This document shows, piece after piece, positions 611-42,079 of a DNA stretch of 64,000 nt (position 1 is the first letter of the stretch; each line of letters begins with the position of its first letter). Where the stretch lies: positions 86,428,001 to 86,492,000 of the forward strand of contig NC_043001.1 in NCBI RefSeq assembly GCF_006345805.1. The letters are read 5' to 3'. The translations under genes were made by a program, and so were the position numbers. The notes under the pieces are model-generated. The model worked only from the letters and a program-made list of their open reading frames with translations. It was not told the origin of the DNA and ran no database searches. Source of the DNA: Octopus sinensis (Eukaryota).

Positions 611-625
611 GATTTGAGAATCAAG
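611..625 (+). CDS. Micro-exon, 15 nt, phase 1-1 (x-F-E-N-Q)
   Basis: cttttttcag|GATTTGAGAATCAAG|gtaagt: pyrimidine tract, AG and consensus donor; length divisible by 3; flanks paralogous to those of 3987. Confidence 0.75.
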
Positions 626-726
626 GTAAGTAGATAATTATTTCATAATATATTTAAATTCATAATGCTGCATTTAATTTTTAAAATTCATCAAAATTTA
701 TAAGTAAACAAGCCTGATTATGGGGT

Positions 727-1085
727 TAACAAACTCGCTATGCAACCGCGTAGTGAGACTGAACAATTTTTCGGGTTCAGCCCCACTGCACGGTACCTTG
801 TGCAAGTGTCTTCTACTATAGTCCCAGGTCGGTCAATGCCATGTCAGTGAATTAGATAGAAGGAAACTCTAAAAATATGTCTTTCTATCTGCATTTGTCC
901 CCACCACAGCTTGACAACCAGTATTGTTTTCTTTTCATCCCTGTAACTTAGTCGTTTGGCAAAAGGGTCGATAGAATAAGTAGTAGACTTTAGAATAATC
1001 AATGGGATCAATTTGTATTTAATTCCTCTTTTAAGTCAGTGCTCCAGTACGGTTGGAATTCTATGAGTAAAACAAGTAAAAGCCA
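727..1085 (+). mobile_element. Decayed octopus tRNA-derived SINE
   Basis: Alignable by eye to the intact copy at 11348-11762; duplicated at about 4100-4410 with the exon unit. Confidence 0.6.
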
Positions 1086-1329
1086 AAATATGAATCAGCA
1101 TATACCAAAAGACACACTTGTATCTATGGCCCATTGAATAGAAATGAAGATTCTCTTGTCTTGGCTGAAATACAGCTGAAGATCTTTTTGTGAAAGATCT
1201 GCAATGGTTTTCTGAAATTTTTTAAACTTTCAAAGGGATCTCGAAGTCCTATCGTTTGAATAAAAGAATATATTTATAATTAAGTGAAATACATTTTAAT
1301 ATTTTACACGTGAAAAAAAGAAGGTGCCA

Positions 1330-1560
1330 AGCTGACAGAATCGTTTGCGCGCCAGTCAAAAATGTAATGAGTTATGAGCCCAAAATTTGGTCCCCCTTGT
1401 TCGGGTCTTTTCTCAACAACATCATAACTCCACGGGTCATGGCGTTGGGAATTCCCCCGTTCTCCTCCCAGCTGATGTAGACATGCATCACAACGAATGA
1501 GGCATCTGCACATGCACATGATGTTGCTACAAGCCTCTGAAATCGAGTTAACGCGTGCTG
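1330..1560 (-). mobile_element. LINE-like fragment homologous to 3060-3250
   Basis: Shared ...catggcgttgggaattcccccgtt... block. Confidence 0.45.
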
Positions 1561-1977
1561 TAGGTATGCGTCAGGGCGGATGAACAGAGAATCCTTTTCA
1601 AAAATTTCCCTTTCCTCTCAGGATAATGTAGGTGAAGTTAAGTAGTTTGTGTCTTGTTGTAGAGCACTGATCTCCAGATAACAGTTGGGTCTTTGAAAAA
1701 AAGTGAAAAAACTCCTGCCTAATATTAGTCCCAGAAACTATGTCTCAATGGCCGCTCGGAATGAGTTATTATGTATATGAATACAATAAAGCCAATCTTT
1801 ATTCTGAAGATTATTTAGTCAAGATGGAACGATTGTGTTCATCTTCTGGCAAAATAGTAAAACGCAGTTGCTCAGAAAATTCTAAATAATTGTATCTGAC
1901 ACCACTCTTTTATTTAGTTATTTATTTATTGTTATAACAATAACAAAAAACAAAAGCCAGAAAAAATTTTTGTTGCA

Positions 1978-3300
1978 GTGTCCATCCTCGCCAGTCACCT
2001 ACCTTTCAACAAAATTGCTGGAAGGAGGGGGCAGTACTTTCCTCTCCACCCTCACCTTTTCAAGTCTAACTTGAAAATAGTCGATGAGGATTTGGTCTAA
2101 GGGGAAAGTATCTTCCTTCAGTCCTTCCAACCTCGTCCATCATACAACCTCTTTCGTCATAACTACCACATAGAAGAAAACTACTTTCCCTTCCCGACTA
2201 AAAGAAGGCAGCAGAGCGATCTTCTCGGTGGAATCGGCTGATAACCGGATCTGTCCTACATACATCAGGAACTGTTCGAGAAAACTCCGTCAGACAGCAG
2301 TACCTGGACACTGGACGAATCCATGCAGACCGATTTCGTCACTCTGCGCTAATCTCAGTTCTTGTCCACTTGGAGGTCTGGACAAAACTAGACCCCAAGC
2401 AATTTAAGCGGTCTTTTCGTCCATCACCCCACGACACTGTTGTTTAGCATAGCTCTGCTTCCCCAGATGCCGAGCTGCAAACTTCTTTTTAATCTTTACT
2501 CCTGTCACCGCTTCGTACTTCCTTAAGTTAGTACTGATCACCTTGATTTCCGAAATATTCGACACTTCTACAGTGACGTCCACCGCATAAGCCGAAGCAA
2601 ACATTCTGGAGCCTAGTTAACGCGGGATGCCCCTCGAAACATTCAACTTTCTTAGTAATGGCTCGAGAGCCAGCACCGACAGAAAAGGCGAGACTGGGCA
2701 ACCTTGACGGAACGAACGTGCGATGCTAATCGATTCCGACAGATGGTCAATTACTTTTACCACCGAACATTGCAGCGATCAAACCTCTGAGAACAGGACC
2801 GAAACTAGCTGCCGTGAGCCTAGCCTCAACGTATTGATGATGGACCCAATCTAAAGCTTTTTATTGATCCAACTTGATCAGGGCCACACATATGACAGGT
2901 TCCTTTCCTACCCTCTCTCTGATGTAGCATGTGTGCTGGGGGTTGTCGTGGATAGATCTGTTTGAGATAGTACAGTCTGCGCGTCACCTACCAGATTATC
3001 GGCAACAAACTCAACCTCTTGTCTAACACCTTGTCCAAAGTCTTTTAATCTACATTCAGCAAAGTTATGGGCCCTCTTGTTCGGTTCTTTTCTCAACAGT
3101 ATCATAACGCCACGGGTTACAGCATTGGGAATTCCCCCCGTTATCTTCCCAGTTGATGTAGACACGCACCACGAGATCACGCAACAAGTCTGACATATGA
3201 AAACAAAGCTCCAAGGGCAGACCACCCAACCCCAGTGACTTCTCTCTTGTGAAGCTTATCATCCCGTTCTTTATGCCAGCAGCTGTTATCAGCATTTCAC
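1978..3300 (-). mobile_element. Degraded L1/Tx1-clade reverse transcriptase fragment
   Basis: Minus-strand LIKLDQ*KALDWVHH, RSFRQGCPVSPFLSVLALEPLLRKL and SAYAVDVT match L1/Tx1 RT motifs; contains stops. Confidence 0.75.
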
Positions 3301-39162: not shown

Positions 39163-39476
39163 TAACGCCGAGATCACCGTGACCGACCAGGCTATCAGAT
39201 GTTGACACACATCGCTGATCAAAATGCGCTTCACATTGTTTTAGCCTTCAAATGACGCCACCCCGCTGGCTAAGCGAGCAGGCCAAGAGAAGAAAGTGTG
39301 AGAGAAAGCTGTGGCGAAAGAGTACAGCAGGGATCGCCACCACCACCTGCTGGAGCCTCGTGGAGCTTTAGGTGTTTTCGCTTAATAAACACTCATAACC
39401 CCCAGTCTGGGAAACGAAGCCTCGATCCAACAACAGCAAGTCCGCTGTCCTAACCACTGGGCCTTTGCGTCTCCAC
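39163..39476 (-). mobile_element. Second tRNA-head SINE family
   Basis: Reverse-strand head; the paralogous copy at about 21055-21125 is cut by the Penelope fragment. Confidence 0.75.
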
Positions 39477-39596
39477 ATATATATATATATATATATATAT
39501 ATATATATATGTAGGTCCCGGGTTGATTCGGGGTTAACCACAGTAAATAAGGTACTCAATACATAGCAGAGTAAAATTAATTTATTATATAGAAGG

Positions 39597-39647
39597 AGCT
39601 TCTACAGGACTAGAACTGTTTCATTCAAGAGAAATCTTCAGGAAGCT
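39597..39647 (-). ncRNA. Type I hammerhead ribozyme (left arm)
   Basis: Exact reverse complement of 40577-40627. Confidence 0.75.
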
Positions 39648-40576
39648 AGTTAACAAGATTTGTATTGGCATTTATACATTTAGGCATGTTTATAGGGGTG
39701 GTGGTGGGGGACTTTTTGGGGGTAGGCATAGCGCAAAAAAATCATGCTTGGGGGAGTGGTCAAGGAGTCAGTGGTAAATTAGATAGAAGAATAAATAAAA
39801 GAATAAAAAAAGAATAAAAAAATAATTAAAAAATATATAATTATATAGAAGAATAGAGTTTTAGGTAAATAAGGAAATTCTCAACACACACACATATACA
39901 TACACACATACATACACACACACACCCATATATATATATATATATATATATATATATATACACAACACACACACACACATATACATACATATATCTACAT
40001 ATACATATATATATATATATATACATATACATATACATACATACACATATACATGTATATGCATGTATATGTGTATGTATGTATATGTATATGTATATAT
40101 ATATATGTATATGTAGATATATGTATGTATATACATACATATAATACATACACATATACATGTATATGCATGTATATGTGTATGTATGTATATGTATATG
40201 TATATATATATATATATATATGTATATGTAGATATATGTATGTATATGTGTGTGTGTGTATATATATATATATATATATATATATATATATATATATATG
40301 GGTGTGTGTGTATGTATGTGTGTATGTATATGTGTGTGTGTTGAGAATTTCCTTATTTACCTAAAACTCTATTCTTCTATATAATTTTATATTTTTTTAT
40401 TCTTTTTTTATTCTTTTTTATTCTTTTATTTATTCTTCTATCTAATTTACCACTGACTCCTTGACCACTCCCCCAAGTATGATTTTTTTGCGCTATGCCT
40501 ACCCCCAAAAAGTCCCCCACCACCACCCCTATAAACCTGCCTAAATGTATAAATGCCAATACAATTCTTGTTAACT

Positions 40577-40627
40577 AGCTTCCTGAAGATTTCTCTTGAA
40601 TGAAACAGTTCTAGTCCTGTAGAAGCT
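40577..40627 (+). ncRNA. Type I hammerhead ribozyme (right arm)
   Basis: agcttc-CTGAAGA-t(ttc-tctt-gaa)t-GAAA-cag-ttctagtc-ctg-TA-gaagct: intact core, stems I (6 bp), II (3 bp) and III (3 bp), GUA triplet. Confidence 0.78.
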
Positions 40628-42064
40628 CCTTCTATATAATAAATATATATATATATATATATATATATATAATATATATATATATATATATATATATAGC
40701 GCAGGAGTGACTGTGTGGTAACTAACTTGCTTACCATGCATATGGTTCCGAATTCAGTCCCACTGCGTGGCAACTTGGGCCAGTGTCCTCTACTATAGCC
40801 TCGAGCAGACCAAAGCCCTGTGAGTGGATTTGATAGACGAAAACAGGAAGAAGCCCGTTGCATGTGAGTGTATGTGTGTATGTGTGTATGTATGTGTGCG
40901 TGTATTTATCTATATAGATAGATAGATAGATAGATAGATAGATAGATAGATAGATAGATAGATAGATAGATAGATAGATAGATAGATAGATAGATAGATA
41001 GATATATTGATAGATAGATAGATAGATAGATAGATAGATAGATAGATAGATAGATAGATAGATAGATAGATAGATAGATAGATAGCCAGACAGACAGATA
41101 GATAGATAGATAGATAGATAGATAGATAGATAGATAGATAGATAGATAGATAGATAGATAGATAGATAGATAGATAGATAGATAGACAGATAGCCAGACA
41201 GATAGATAGATAGATATACACACACTCGAGTGTATCTGTGTGTACATTTATGGATATACACATAGTAAATATGCATTCATACTTCTGTTTAACAGTCATA
41301 CATAGAATATGTATTTAGTTACAAACTATTCAATTGTTGCTTTTCTGAATGTATACATGCAGCTAGGTAATTACGAAAAGATCTTTCATCAAAACTAATT
41401 TACGTTTTGTTTCAAGCTTTTTTTCTTTCTATTTTTTTTATATTTCGAACAAATATCCTGAGATATTCGCGATAATTACTGATTTGGAGAAATGCTTTTA
41501 CTTCGATATATATAACATCACAATTATCTGAACACGTTTTTTGCAATGATGTTAAATTCTATATTAAACAGTTCATAAAATCGGAAAAGATTTGTGAATC
41601 CATCAGGCAGAAAAAATACGTTCCATACGGGGATTTGCTAACAATTAGTCAATTCGAATTTTGAAAACAGATTTATATTCTTTTATTCGTTATGGTATAA
41701 TGTTGACGACGTGGATGGAGGAAGATATAATAAAGGAAATTGCATTAGATTTGGATAGCTACGTTAAGAATAGCCGTAAAACACACTCTTACATAGATAG
41801 CATTCTGCTGAAATCTGGATTCATTTGTTTATCATGCTTACAAATGGACACACATTTGTATACCAGGGTATGTATGCATTTATGTATATGCACAAACTAA
41901 ATATATATAATTCTGTTTAATGGTCATAGAGAAAAAATGCATTTACCTGTAAAATATTCAATGGTTCTTCATTTTTTAAATTATACATGCAACTAGTTAA
42001 TAACGAAAGGCAGTTTTATCAAAATATATTCACATTAATTTTTCCTTTTTCCTCCATTTTTCAG

Positions 42065-42079
42065 CCGCCAGACACTTTG
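42065..42079 (+). CDS. Micro-exon, 15 nt (A-A-R-H-F)
   Basis: catttttcag|CCGCCAGACACTTTG|gtgagt; paralogue of 24906. Confidence 0.75.

Follow-up and report, generated by a model that had tools for sequence, protein, structure and literature searches.

A tandemly amplified array of micro-exon-like units in Octopus sinensis with conserved intron flanks and variable exon bodies

We describe a run of micro-exon-like units, approximately 50 kb long, in the genome of Octopus sinensis (NCBI RefSeq assembly GCF_006345805.1, contig NC_043001.1, positions 86,428,001 to 86,492,000 of the forward strand). The whole of this 64,000-nucleotide (nt) stretch is referred to below as the window, and all coordinates are positions within it. 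On the plus strand, between positions 611 and 51104, lie at least 11 intact units of 12-24 nt each, and the run reaches past the interval of 611-42079 that had been covered by a first-pass annotation of the same DNA. Judged from their sequence, the units are most likely real, duplicated, symmetric micro-exons. The interpretation that we favor, with a probability of about 0.55, is that of a real and recently amplified micro-exon array, in which the intron flanks that serve splicing are constrained and the encoded protein is under weak constraint.

Intact units and their exon-like properties

Candidate exons were collected on both strands with a strict scan in which a pyrimidine-rich tract and YAG had to be followed, after 6-120 nt, by GTRAGT. 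Fifteen such acceptor-plus-donor pairs are found on the plus strand versus one on the minus strand, and 13 of the 15 plus-strand candidates have a length that is a multiple of three. The strict scan set together with 611-625, which came from a relaxed scan, makes up the 11 intact exons. All of their lengths are multiples of three, and they share one common open frame with phase-1 introns throughout. Among the 11 outermost intact exons, family D is represented by two 15-nt paralogues, at 611-625 (GATTTGAGAATCAAG, reading xFENQ in the shared frame) and 3987-4001 (CGATAGTGATACATG, xIVIH). Four 24-nt exons belong to class B and are located at 7950-7973 (xKDQEPEF), 18984-19007 (xVVPEAEI), 35401-35424 (xILPEAEI) and 48156-48179, the last being identical to 35401. 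The class A exon at 16220-16243 (24 nt, xRDSVQDI) has a mosaic appearance, and class C contributes the 15-nt exons at 24906-24920 (xAIQF) and 42065-42079 (xARHF). Finally, two single-copy exons with strong splice sites, grouped as family E, are found at 50769-50783 (15 nt, xVQPT) and 51093-51104 (12 nt, xTQT).

Every acceptor is preceded by an AG-free zone of 42-129 nt, including those of the unrelated families D (129 nt at 611) and E (58 nt at 50769 and 53 nt at 51093), against a window background whose median is 7 and whose 95th percentile is 56. The exons also differ from their surroundings in composition, with 43.7% GC versus 24.5% in the flanks and a three times higher CpG density (4.7 versus 1.6 per 100 nt). 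The window as a whole is AT rich (34% GC), with many microsatellites and transposable-element fragments, and the introns of the array measure 0.3-8 kb. When the 11 intact exons are joined, the sole open frame consists of two bases, whole codons and one base and translates as FENQAIVIHVKDQEPEFCRDSVQDIVVVPEAEIAAIQFDILPEAEIAARHFDILPEAEIGVQPTLTQT; the remaining two frames contain 4 and 5 stops. This open frame argues less strongly for exons than do the bias to one strand, the divisibility of the lengths by three and the AG-free zones. The spliced peptide would comprise 68 residues, is acidic with a net charge of about -11, and repeats a pattern of 13 residues in which AAxxF comes after xxxPEAEI. 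If spliced as predicted, more than 50 kb would belong to one plus-strand gene, the coding part of which would, within the window, consist solely of micro-exons of 12-24 nt. Because the lengths are multiples of three and the borders are phase 1, any subset of them could be joined in frame.

A search of 5.8 billion proteins with the spliced peptide gave three short-word candidates, none of which scored, and scans of metagenome DNA with the conserved intron block described below and with a class B exon plus its donor gave zero matches. Nothing was found with Rfam across the whole window. Pfam detected transposable-element domains only among ten selected open reading frames (ORFs), plus one sub-threshold match that we judged to be due to chance, and full-text literature searches returned no description of a cephalopod micro-exon gene or of such an array. 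Standard gene prediction may miss exons of this size, which could partly explain the lack of a protein match in the databases. The absence of a protein or DNA relative from these searches is nevertheless what would be expected if the units are not expressed and represent either an amplified non-coding repeat or the remnants of a dead exon array with splice-like signals. Also in line with such an origin are the visible decay of 9 of the 20 units, the neutral-like evolution of the exon bases, and the abundance of transposable elements and microsatellites at the locus. However, we consider this explanation quite unlikely, given the 15:1 strand asymmetry, the common open frame, and the recurrence of lengths in threes in the independent families D, A/B/C and E. 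Neither the long AG-free zones in unrelated families nor the islands of high GC amid AT-rich flanks fit it well, the flanks are more conserved than distant intron, and consensus splice sites are perfect in 11 units though sister copies have lost theirs.

Downstream of the last unit, at 53200-53346, a strong acceptor (17 of 20 pyrimidines) is followed by a 48-codon frame in the correct phase and then a stop. This frame was considered as a terminal exon after 51104 and was set aside, as nothing else supports it.

Amplification and decay of the array

Sixteen of the units are homologous and fall into three classes: A (24 nt), B (24 nt with a PEAEI core) and C (15 nt). Fourteen of them were found through a 23-nt intron motif, AACGAAAGGCTGTTTTATCAAAA, that occurs in the window in 14 copies at no more than three mismatches, all on the plus strand; 7950 and 10277 are two more divergent copies. 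Across the classes, approximately 130 nt upstream and 70 nt downstream can be aligned, and the exon bodies barely align.

Primary splice sites are damaged in 9 of the 20 units, five of class A and four of class B. The class A copies have CGG in place of CAG, combined with the donor GTCAGT at 16444-16467 (the 224-nt tandem neighbor of 16220) and 18716-18739, and with ATCAGT, in which the donor GT is lost, in three others. These are 26052-26075, 30662-30685, which thus has neither an AG acceptor nor a GT donor, and 43393-43416, the exon of which is identical to that at 30662. In the four class B copies, CAG is replaced by CTG. In each of them an inner AG six bases into the exon could give an 18-nt exon instead, namely 10283-10300 (PEAEI) within the unit at 10277-10300, 26329-26346 within 26323-26346, 30975-30992 (PEAEF) within 30969-30992, and 43708-43725 within 43702-43725.

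The second AG at exon positions 5-6, which forms a tandem acceptor, is carried by 12 units in all (7950, 10277, 16220, 16444, 18716, 18984, 26052, 26323, 30662, 30969, 43393 and 43702). Its use would yield the 18-nt variant in the same phase, and it is the sole AG remaining in copies with a mutated primary acceptor. The inner AG is missing from 35401 and 48156. At 35401 it is abolished, relative to 18984, by three changes (TCGTAG to ACATAC), and all of the changes in 35401 and 48156 relative to 18984 fall within the six bases between the tandem acceptors. As the changes are confined there and the 18-nt PEAEI core is untouched, as it is among the intact class B copies generally, they may concern splice-site choice and not protein.

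The A/B/C family has spread by tandem duplication and by segmental duplications that carried long interspersed nuclear element (LINE) sequence. Three modes of growth can be recognized: a 224-nt tandem duplication (16058-16581), A plus B pairs at a spacing of 268-309 nt, and large segmental duplications. An example of the last is the 6.4-kb segment at 29512-35867, which contains units of class A, B and B together with a LINE fragment and is duplicated at 42271-48606 with 96% identity; it belongs to a repeat of approximately 12.7 kb that built the array. The LINE reverse-transcriptase fragment, at 32276-34102 on the minus strand, lies within an intron and was duplicated together with the exon units, with sister copies at approximately 27.0-29.5 kb and 44.36-46.87 kb. 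Argonauta hians provides the sole named relative both of a LINE reverse-transcriptase ORF at 44363-45448 (minus strand, 61% identity) and of a zf-RVT ORF at 23297-23965 (minus strand, 57% identity) from an unrelated retroelement, which agrees with a cephalopod and probably octopod origin. Exact look-ups of two transposable-element ORFs in public assemblies gave no record. The 3987 exon of family D sits in a tandem duplicate of approximately 3.4 kb (353-1308 versus 3716-4636, 69-71% identity).

The family thus grew first by local tandem duplication of 224-310-nt units and then by segmental duplications of approximately 4.5 and 12.7 kb, with LINE fragments carried along. It has the behavior of a birth-and-death array, in which some copies keep both splice sites, others have lost the acceptor, the donor or both, and some may resort to the AG six bases inside the exon.

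Two repeats may be connected with this growth. An element of approximately 430 nt is present in seven copies that are 76-98% identical (8024-8451, 17610-18029, 25130-25549, 29511-29927, 34083-34499, 42267-42686 and 46847-47254). Three copies directly adjoin minus-strand LINE ORFs at the 5' end; the element probably represents the LINE's 5' region and is a likely substrate of the unequal crossovers that amplified the array. The second is a 40-nt unit, ATTTTCCAATAATGTTAATTTGTACATTAAACAATATATA, in tandem arrays of 3-5 copies at 30747-30881, 35097-35312, 43478-43612 and 47853-48067. These arrays stand just upstream of class B units, and since class A units have this motif as their downstream flank, the exon units seem to have grown out of the repeat.

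Other repeats and transposable-element sequences also lie in and around the array. Between 18984 and 24906 lie a GIY-YIG endonuclease ORF at 21177-21626 on the plus strand (Pfam E=2e-6), which may be Penelope-like, and a zf-RVT ORF at 23294-24109 on the minus strand that represents a second LINE family. The intron that separates units 10277 and 16220 contains a minisatellite (13409-14346) of about 40 copies of a 23-nt unit, GGGGAAAATTTTCAAAAATTTTT, on which a higher-order period of 46/68/304 nt is superimposed. Downstream of exon 35401, the intron holds a very recent 650-nt tandem duplication (35861-36507 versus 36705-37354, 98.8% identity). A short interspersed repeat marked by GGTACCTTGTGCAAGTGTCTTCTACTATAG, which we take to resemble an abundant octopus short interspersed nuclear element, occurs at about 760-880, 4140-4260, 9081-9138 (minus strand) and 40447-40863 (minus strand). 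An inverted pair of approximately 900 nt (49519-50400 versus 61218-60394, 68% identity) probably represents two old repeat copies in opposite orientation. Beyond the array, at 54093-57054, is a (CATA)n microsatellite of approximately 3 kb (about 740 copies, 87% matches, GC skew -0.83), which generates long artefactual ORFs on both strands.

Divergence of exon bodies and intron flanks

The first-pass annotation had proposed, from counts made by eye in four pairs of units, that the exons diverge far faster than their flanking introns, a pattern known from diversifying selection in conotoxins, snake toxins and schistosome micro-exon genes, and had inferred from it a recognition or arms-race role (gamete, immune, venom or adhesive). 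All four counts were reproduced; what they mean differs from pair to pair. Exons 611 and 3987 are identical at 7 of 15 positions and the 19 nt downstream at 18 of 19. However, their alignment extends over 983 columns with 69% identity, and 17-21% of its 15-column windows are at least as divergent as the exon, which is therefore not an outlier; we rejected this pair as a sign of exon-specific divergence.

Exons 16220 and 16444 are identical at 14 of 24 positions, compared with 84 of 88 at -130 to -31 and 19 of 22 at -30 to -1 upstream. With 10 of 24 mismatches versus 9.3% in the flank (P=1e-4), this is the sole pair that is significant individually. Nevertheless, the partner at 16444 is a decayed copy, and the flanks of 16220 are of two kinds: the upstream flank is A-type (94-95% to decayed A copies), and the downstream flank is 79-84% identical to A copies and 77-87% to class B units. 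Because the A-type character is confined to the upstream side, a recombination junction near the 16220 exon, and hence a mosaic unit, is suggested. Such a history could in principle account for the exon-flank contrast more widely, if unequal crossing-over or gene conversion homogenized the flanks and left exon segments that are older and not faster, and a tandem, hierarchical and LINE-rich array would favor recombination. As a general explanation we regard it as very unlikely, since the excess divergence of the 16220/16444 exon persists when only the downstream flank is taken as reference (P=0.024), the divergence peak across the family is centered on the exon with conserved sequence on either side, and gene conversion should not regularly leave out a stretch of 24 nt.

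The remaining two pairs join intact exons. Between 24906 and 42065 there are two differences (I>R and Q>H), and between 18984 and 35401 there are three (VVV>DIL), and all are non-synonymous in the sole open frame, as had been claimed. The exon differences of 13.3% and 12.5% compare with 4.2% (P=0.13) and 4.3% (P=0.10), respectively, in intron distant from any unit.

To place all 16 homologous units on one scale, we counted Fitch parsimony steps on a neighbor-joining tree built from the flanks. The exon accumulates 1.92 steps per site, compared with 0.69 in the upstream and 1.18 in the downstream flank (Mann-Whitney P=7e-5), and a 24-column sliding sum of the steps peaks on the exon. At the level of the array, the exon excess over the immediate flanks is real, and the exon columns of the full alignment are the fastest. 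It owes mainly to old divergence between classes plus one lineage. The fastest-changing lineage is that of 16220, with 7 of 24 exon sites and four flank changes, compared with 3 of 24 exon sites and about 9 of 162 flank sites in its sister lineage.

A different picture emerges when the reference is intron far from any unit, inside the long duplicated blocks, which we used as a neutral yardstick. In two older comparisons the exons differ by 10.4% versus 9.3% and by 39.6% versus 27.6%, neither of which is significant, and in five recent independent comparisons, pooled, by 6.3% versus 3.7% (Fisher P=0.06, stratified simulation P=0.10). Overall the exon rate is approximately 1.1-1.7 times that of distant intron, not a significant excess, and the youngest duplicates show 0 of 72 exon differences. 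The claim of faster exons thus holds against the immediate flanks, whereas against distant intron the excess is not significant, and the description of conserved introns beside variable exons is apt for the immediate flanks, where the coding bases are least conserved, with the qualification that several of the compared copies have lost their splice sites.

The flanks themselves are conserved. The proximal flank differs less than distant intron in both older comparisons (5.4% versus 9.3%, P=0.02; 10.5% versus 27.6%, P<1e-6). It contains an upstream block 45-80 nt before the exon, exemplified by CAAACTAGTTAATAACGAAAGGCTGTTTTATCAAAA at 16140-16175 on the plus strand. This block includes a branch-point-like TAATAAC, one base off the classic branch-point heptamer, and lies precisely at the 5' border of the AG-free zone. 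Block and AG-free zone are placed as would be predicted if a distant branch point preceded a long pyrimidine tract, an arrangement typical of regulated exons. Very short exons are too small for exonic enhancers and rely on intronic signals. Two forms of RNA pairing were considered and rejected. An alignment fold (RNAalifold) gave -0.33 kcal/mol and zero covarying pairs, which does not support a conserved structure that loops out the exon, although in single-sequence folds an upstream AACGAA occasionally pairs with a downstream TTCGTT. Pairing of the docking/selector type known from Dscam was dismissed because the reverse complement of the block, at up to three mismatches, is not found in the window.

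Selection on the protein was assessed by the Nei-Gojobori method over 22.5 synonymous and 79.5 non-synonymous sites. The pooled ratio of non-synonymous to synonymous differences per site (pN/pS) is 0.33/0.22, or approximately 1.5, with a very wide error, and is not significant; diversifying selection is not demonstrated by it. We consider it unlikely that the contrast reflects such selection on a secreted, combinatorially spliced variable protein, comparable to the products of schistosome micro-exon genes (MEGs), with a role in recognition or an arms race. Several observations do speak for it: the pN/pS point estimate, the five non-synonymous and no synonymous differences in the two recent intact pairs, the rapid change of the 16220 exon relative to its sister lineage, and the symmetric phase-1 design, which permits combinatorial splicing in frame. 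In addition, the per-site exon-to-flank ratio is 4.1 in lineages with intact exons (P=2e-5 versus equal rates) and 1.9 in decayed ones. Set against the neutral baseline, however, no test is significant: the pooled comparison gives P of about 0.06-0.10, the intact versus decayed difference P=0.08, and the 5:0 pattern P of about 0.26-0.29. The youngest duplicates, moreover, are unchanged in their exons, and in class B the core is constant in intact copies, with the changes between the tandem acceptors perhaps related to splicing. Positive selection on the exons may still have acted. The most cautious interpretation is of constraint on the flanks and its absence from the exon bodies. Because the exons evolve at only 1.1-1.7 times the rate of distant intron and pN/pS has so wide an error, the exon-flank contrast owes much to flank constraint. 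The higher GC and CpG content of the exons also raises their mutation rate, and CpG to CpA changes account for 3 of 13 differences in the 16220/16444 and 18984/35401 pairs.

In the constrained-flank interpretation, the proximal intron would be maintained by selection for splicing because exons so short cannot be defined by their own sequence. This proximal intron comprises the block 45-80 nt upstream and the long pyrimidine tract devoid of AG on one side of the exon, and GTGAGTA with the next 60 nt or so on the other. The peptide modules (xxPEAEI, AAxxF and others) would be under little amino-acid constraint, so that the exon bases would drift at the neutral rate or somewhat faster, aided by their GC and CpG content. 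Some of our results weigh against this. The stop-free frame, taken alone, is weak evidence for coding (P about 0.03-0.08). No conventional exon, signal peptide or domain was recognized in the window, and the 68-residue peptide matched none of the proteins searched. The higher exon-to-flank ratio in intact than in decayed lineages points the other way, as does the 16220 lineage, whose seven exon changes are predicted by positive selection and not by pure drift.

Comparison with known micro-exon systems

The toxin families of cone snails and snakes resemble the octopus array in that, among paralogues, a fast exon stands beside a conserved intron. In families of this type, a ratio of non-synonymous to synonymous substitution rates (dN/dS) well above 1 is documented, unlike the non-significant pN/pS obtained here. 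The exons here are also tens of bases long and not a whole mature peptide, and a signal or propeptide exon was not seen in the window.

Neuronal microexons share with the array their size range and their reliance on strongly conserved flanking intron. In family D alone, each exon start is preceded at a distance of 11-12 nt by a TGC (599-601 and 3976-3978), which is the position of the UGC enhancer used by SRRM3/4; no class A, B or C unit has an upstream TGC within 40 nt. Neuronal microexons (3-27 nt, SRRM3/4-dependent) are reported to be themselves highly conserved in sequence. The octopus exon, in contrast, is the least conserved part of the unit, in a comparison among paralogues only. Neuronal microexons are also single exons in conserved genes and not amplified arrays. 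If the units are spliced, the locus would offer a natural experiment on micro-exon recognition, with 16 paralogous units that have the same flanks, differing exon bodies and, in some, inactivated splice sites.

The PEVK region of titin (vertebrate TTN; insect Sallimus) likewise consists of a long series of short, repetitive, in-frame exons that expand and contract by exon duplication. Typical PEVK exons are roughly 75-100 nt, and those of the array are shorter. Human PEVK-C was triplicated in association with LINE-1, and a few of its codons are positively selected (PMC6469411); in the octopus, too, LINE-carrying segments were duplicated together with exons, as in the 6.4-kb pair, and the modules combine acidic residues with proline (PEAEI). 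However, PEVK exons are called at a P+E+V+K fraction of at least 0.54, the default of PEVK_Finder (PMC6469411), and the fraction in the joined peptide is 22/68, or 0.32, on which ground PEVK identity was rejected. The Ig or Fn3 exons that flank PEVK were not seen in the window, where Pfam was run on ten selected ORFs, and the gene probably extends farther on.

The MEGs of schistosomes provide the nearest architectural parallel. They are built of tiny symmetrical exons, each a multiple of three nt long, so that alternative splicing keeps the frame, and their loci are rich in transposable elements and show recent duplication and accelerated change (PMC4350168). Coding in very small symmetrical exons is likewise a property of all 11 intact exons here, for the part of the gene within the window. 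MEGs are reported to be restricted to platyhelminths and always to encode a signal peptide (PMC4350168), whereas the present array is from a cephalopod and its peptide has no sequence similarity to any of the proteins searched; homology to MEGs is excluded. The conventional end exons and signal peptide of MEGs were not recognized in 1-64000; the gene ends probably lie outside the window. As a further difference, the octopus introns measure 0.3-8 kb and the array itself is tandemly amplified. We consider it quite unlikely that a gene with all the properties of the schistosome type, namely amplified symmetric exons, combinatorial variable secreted peptides, diversifying selection and constant flanks, evolved independently in a cephalopod. 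In-frame micro-exon arrays are known mainly from parasitic flatworms, in which they are thought to serve antigenic variation, and from giant elastic muscle proteins. If the octopus units are spliced, the locus would show that micro-exon-array architecture has arisen repeatedly.

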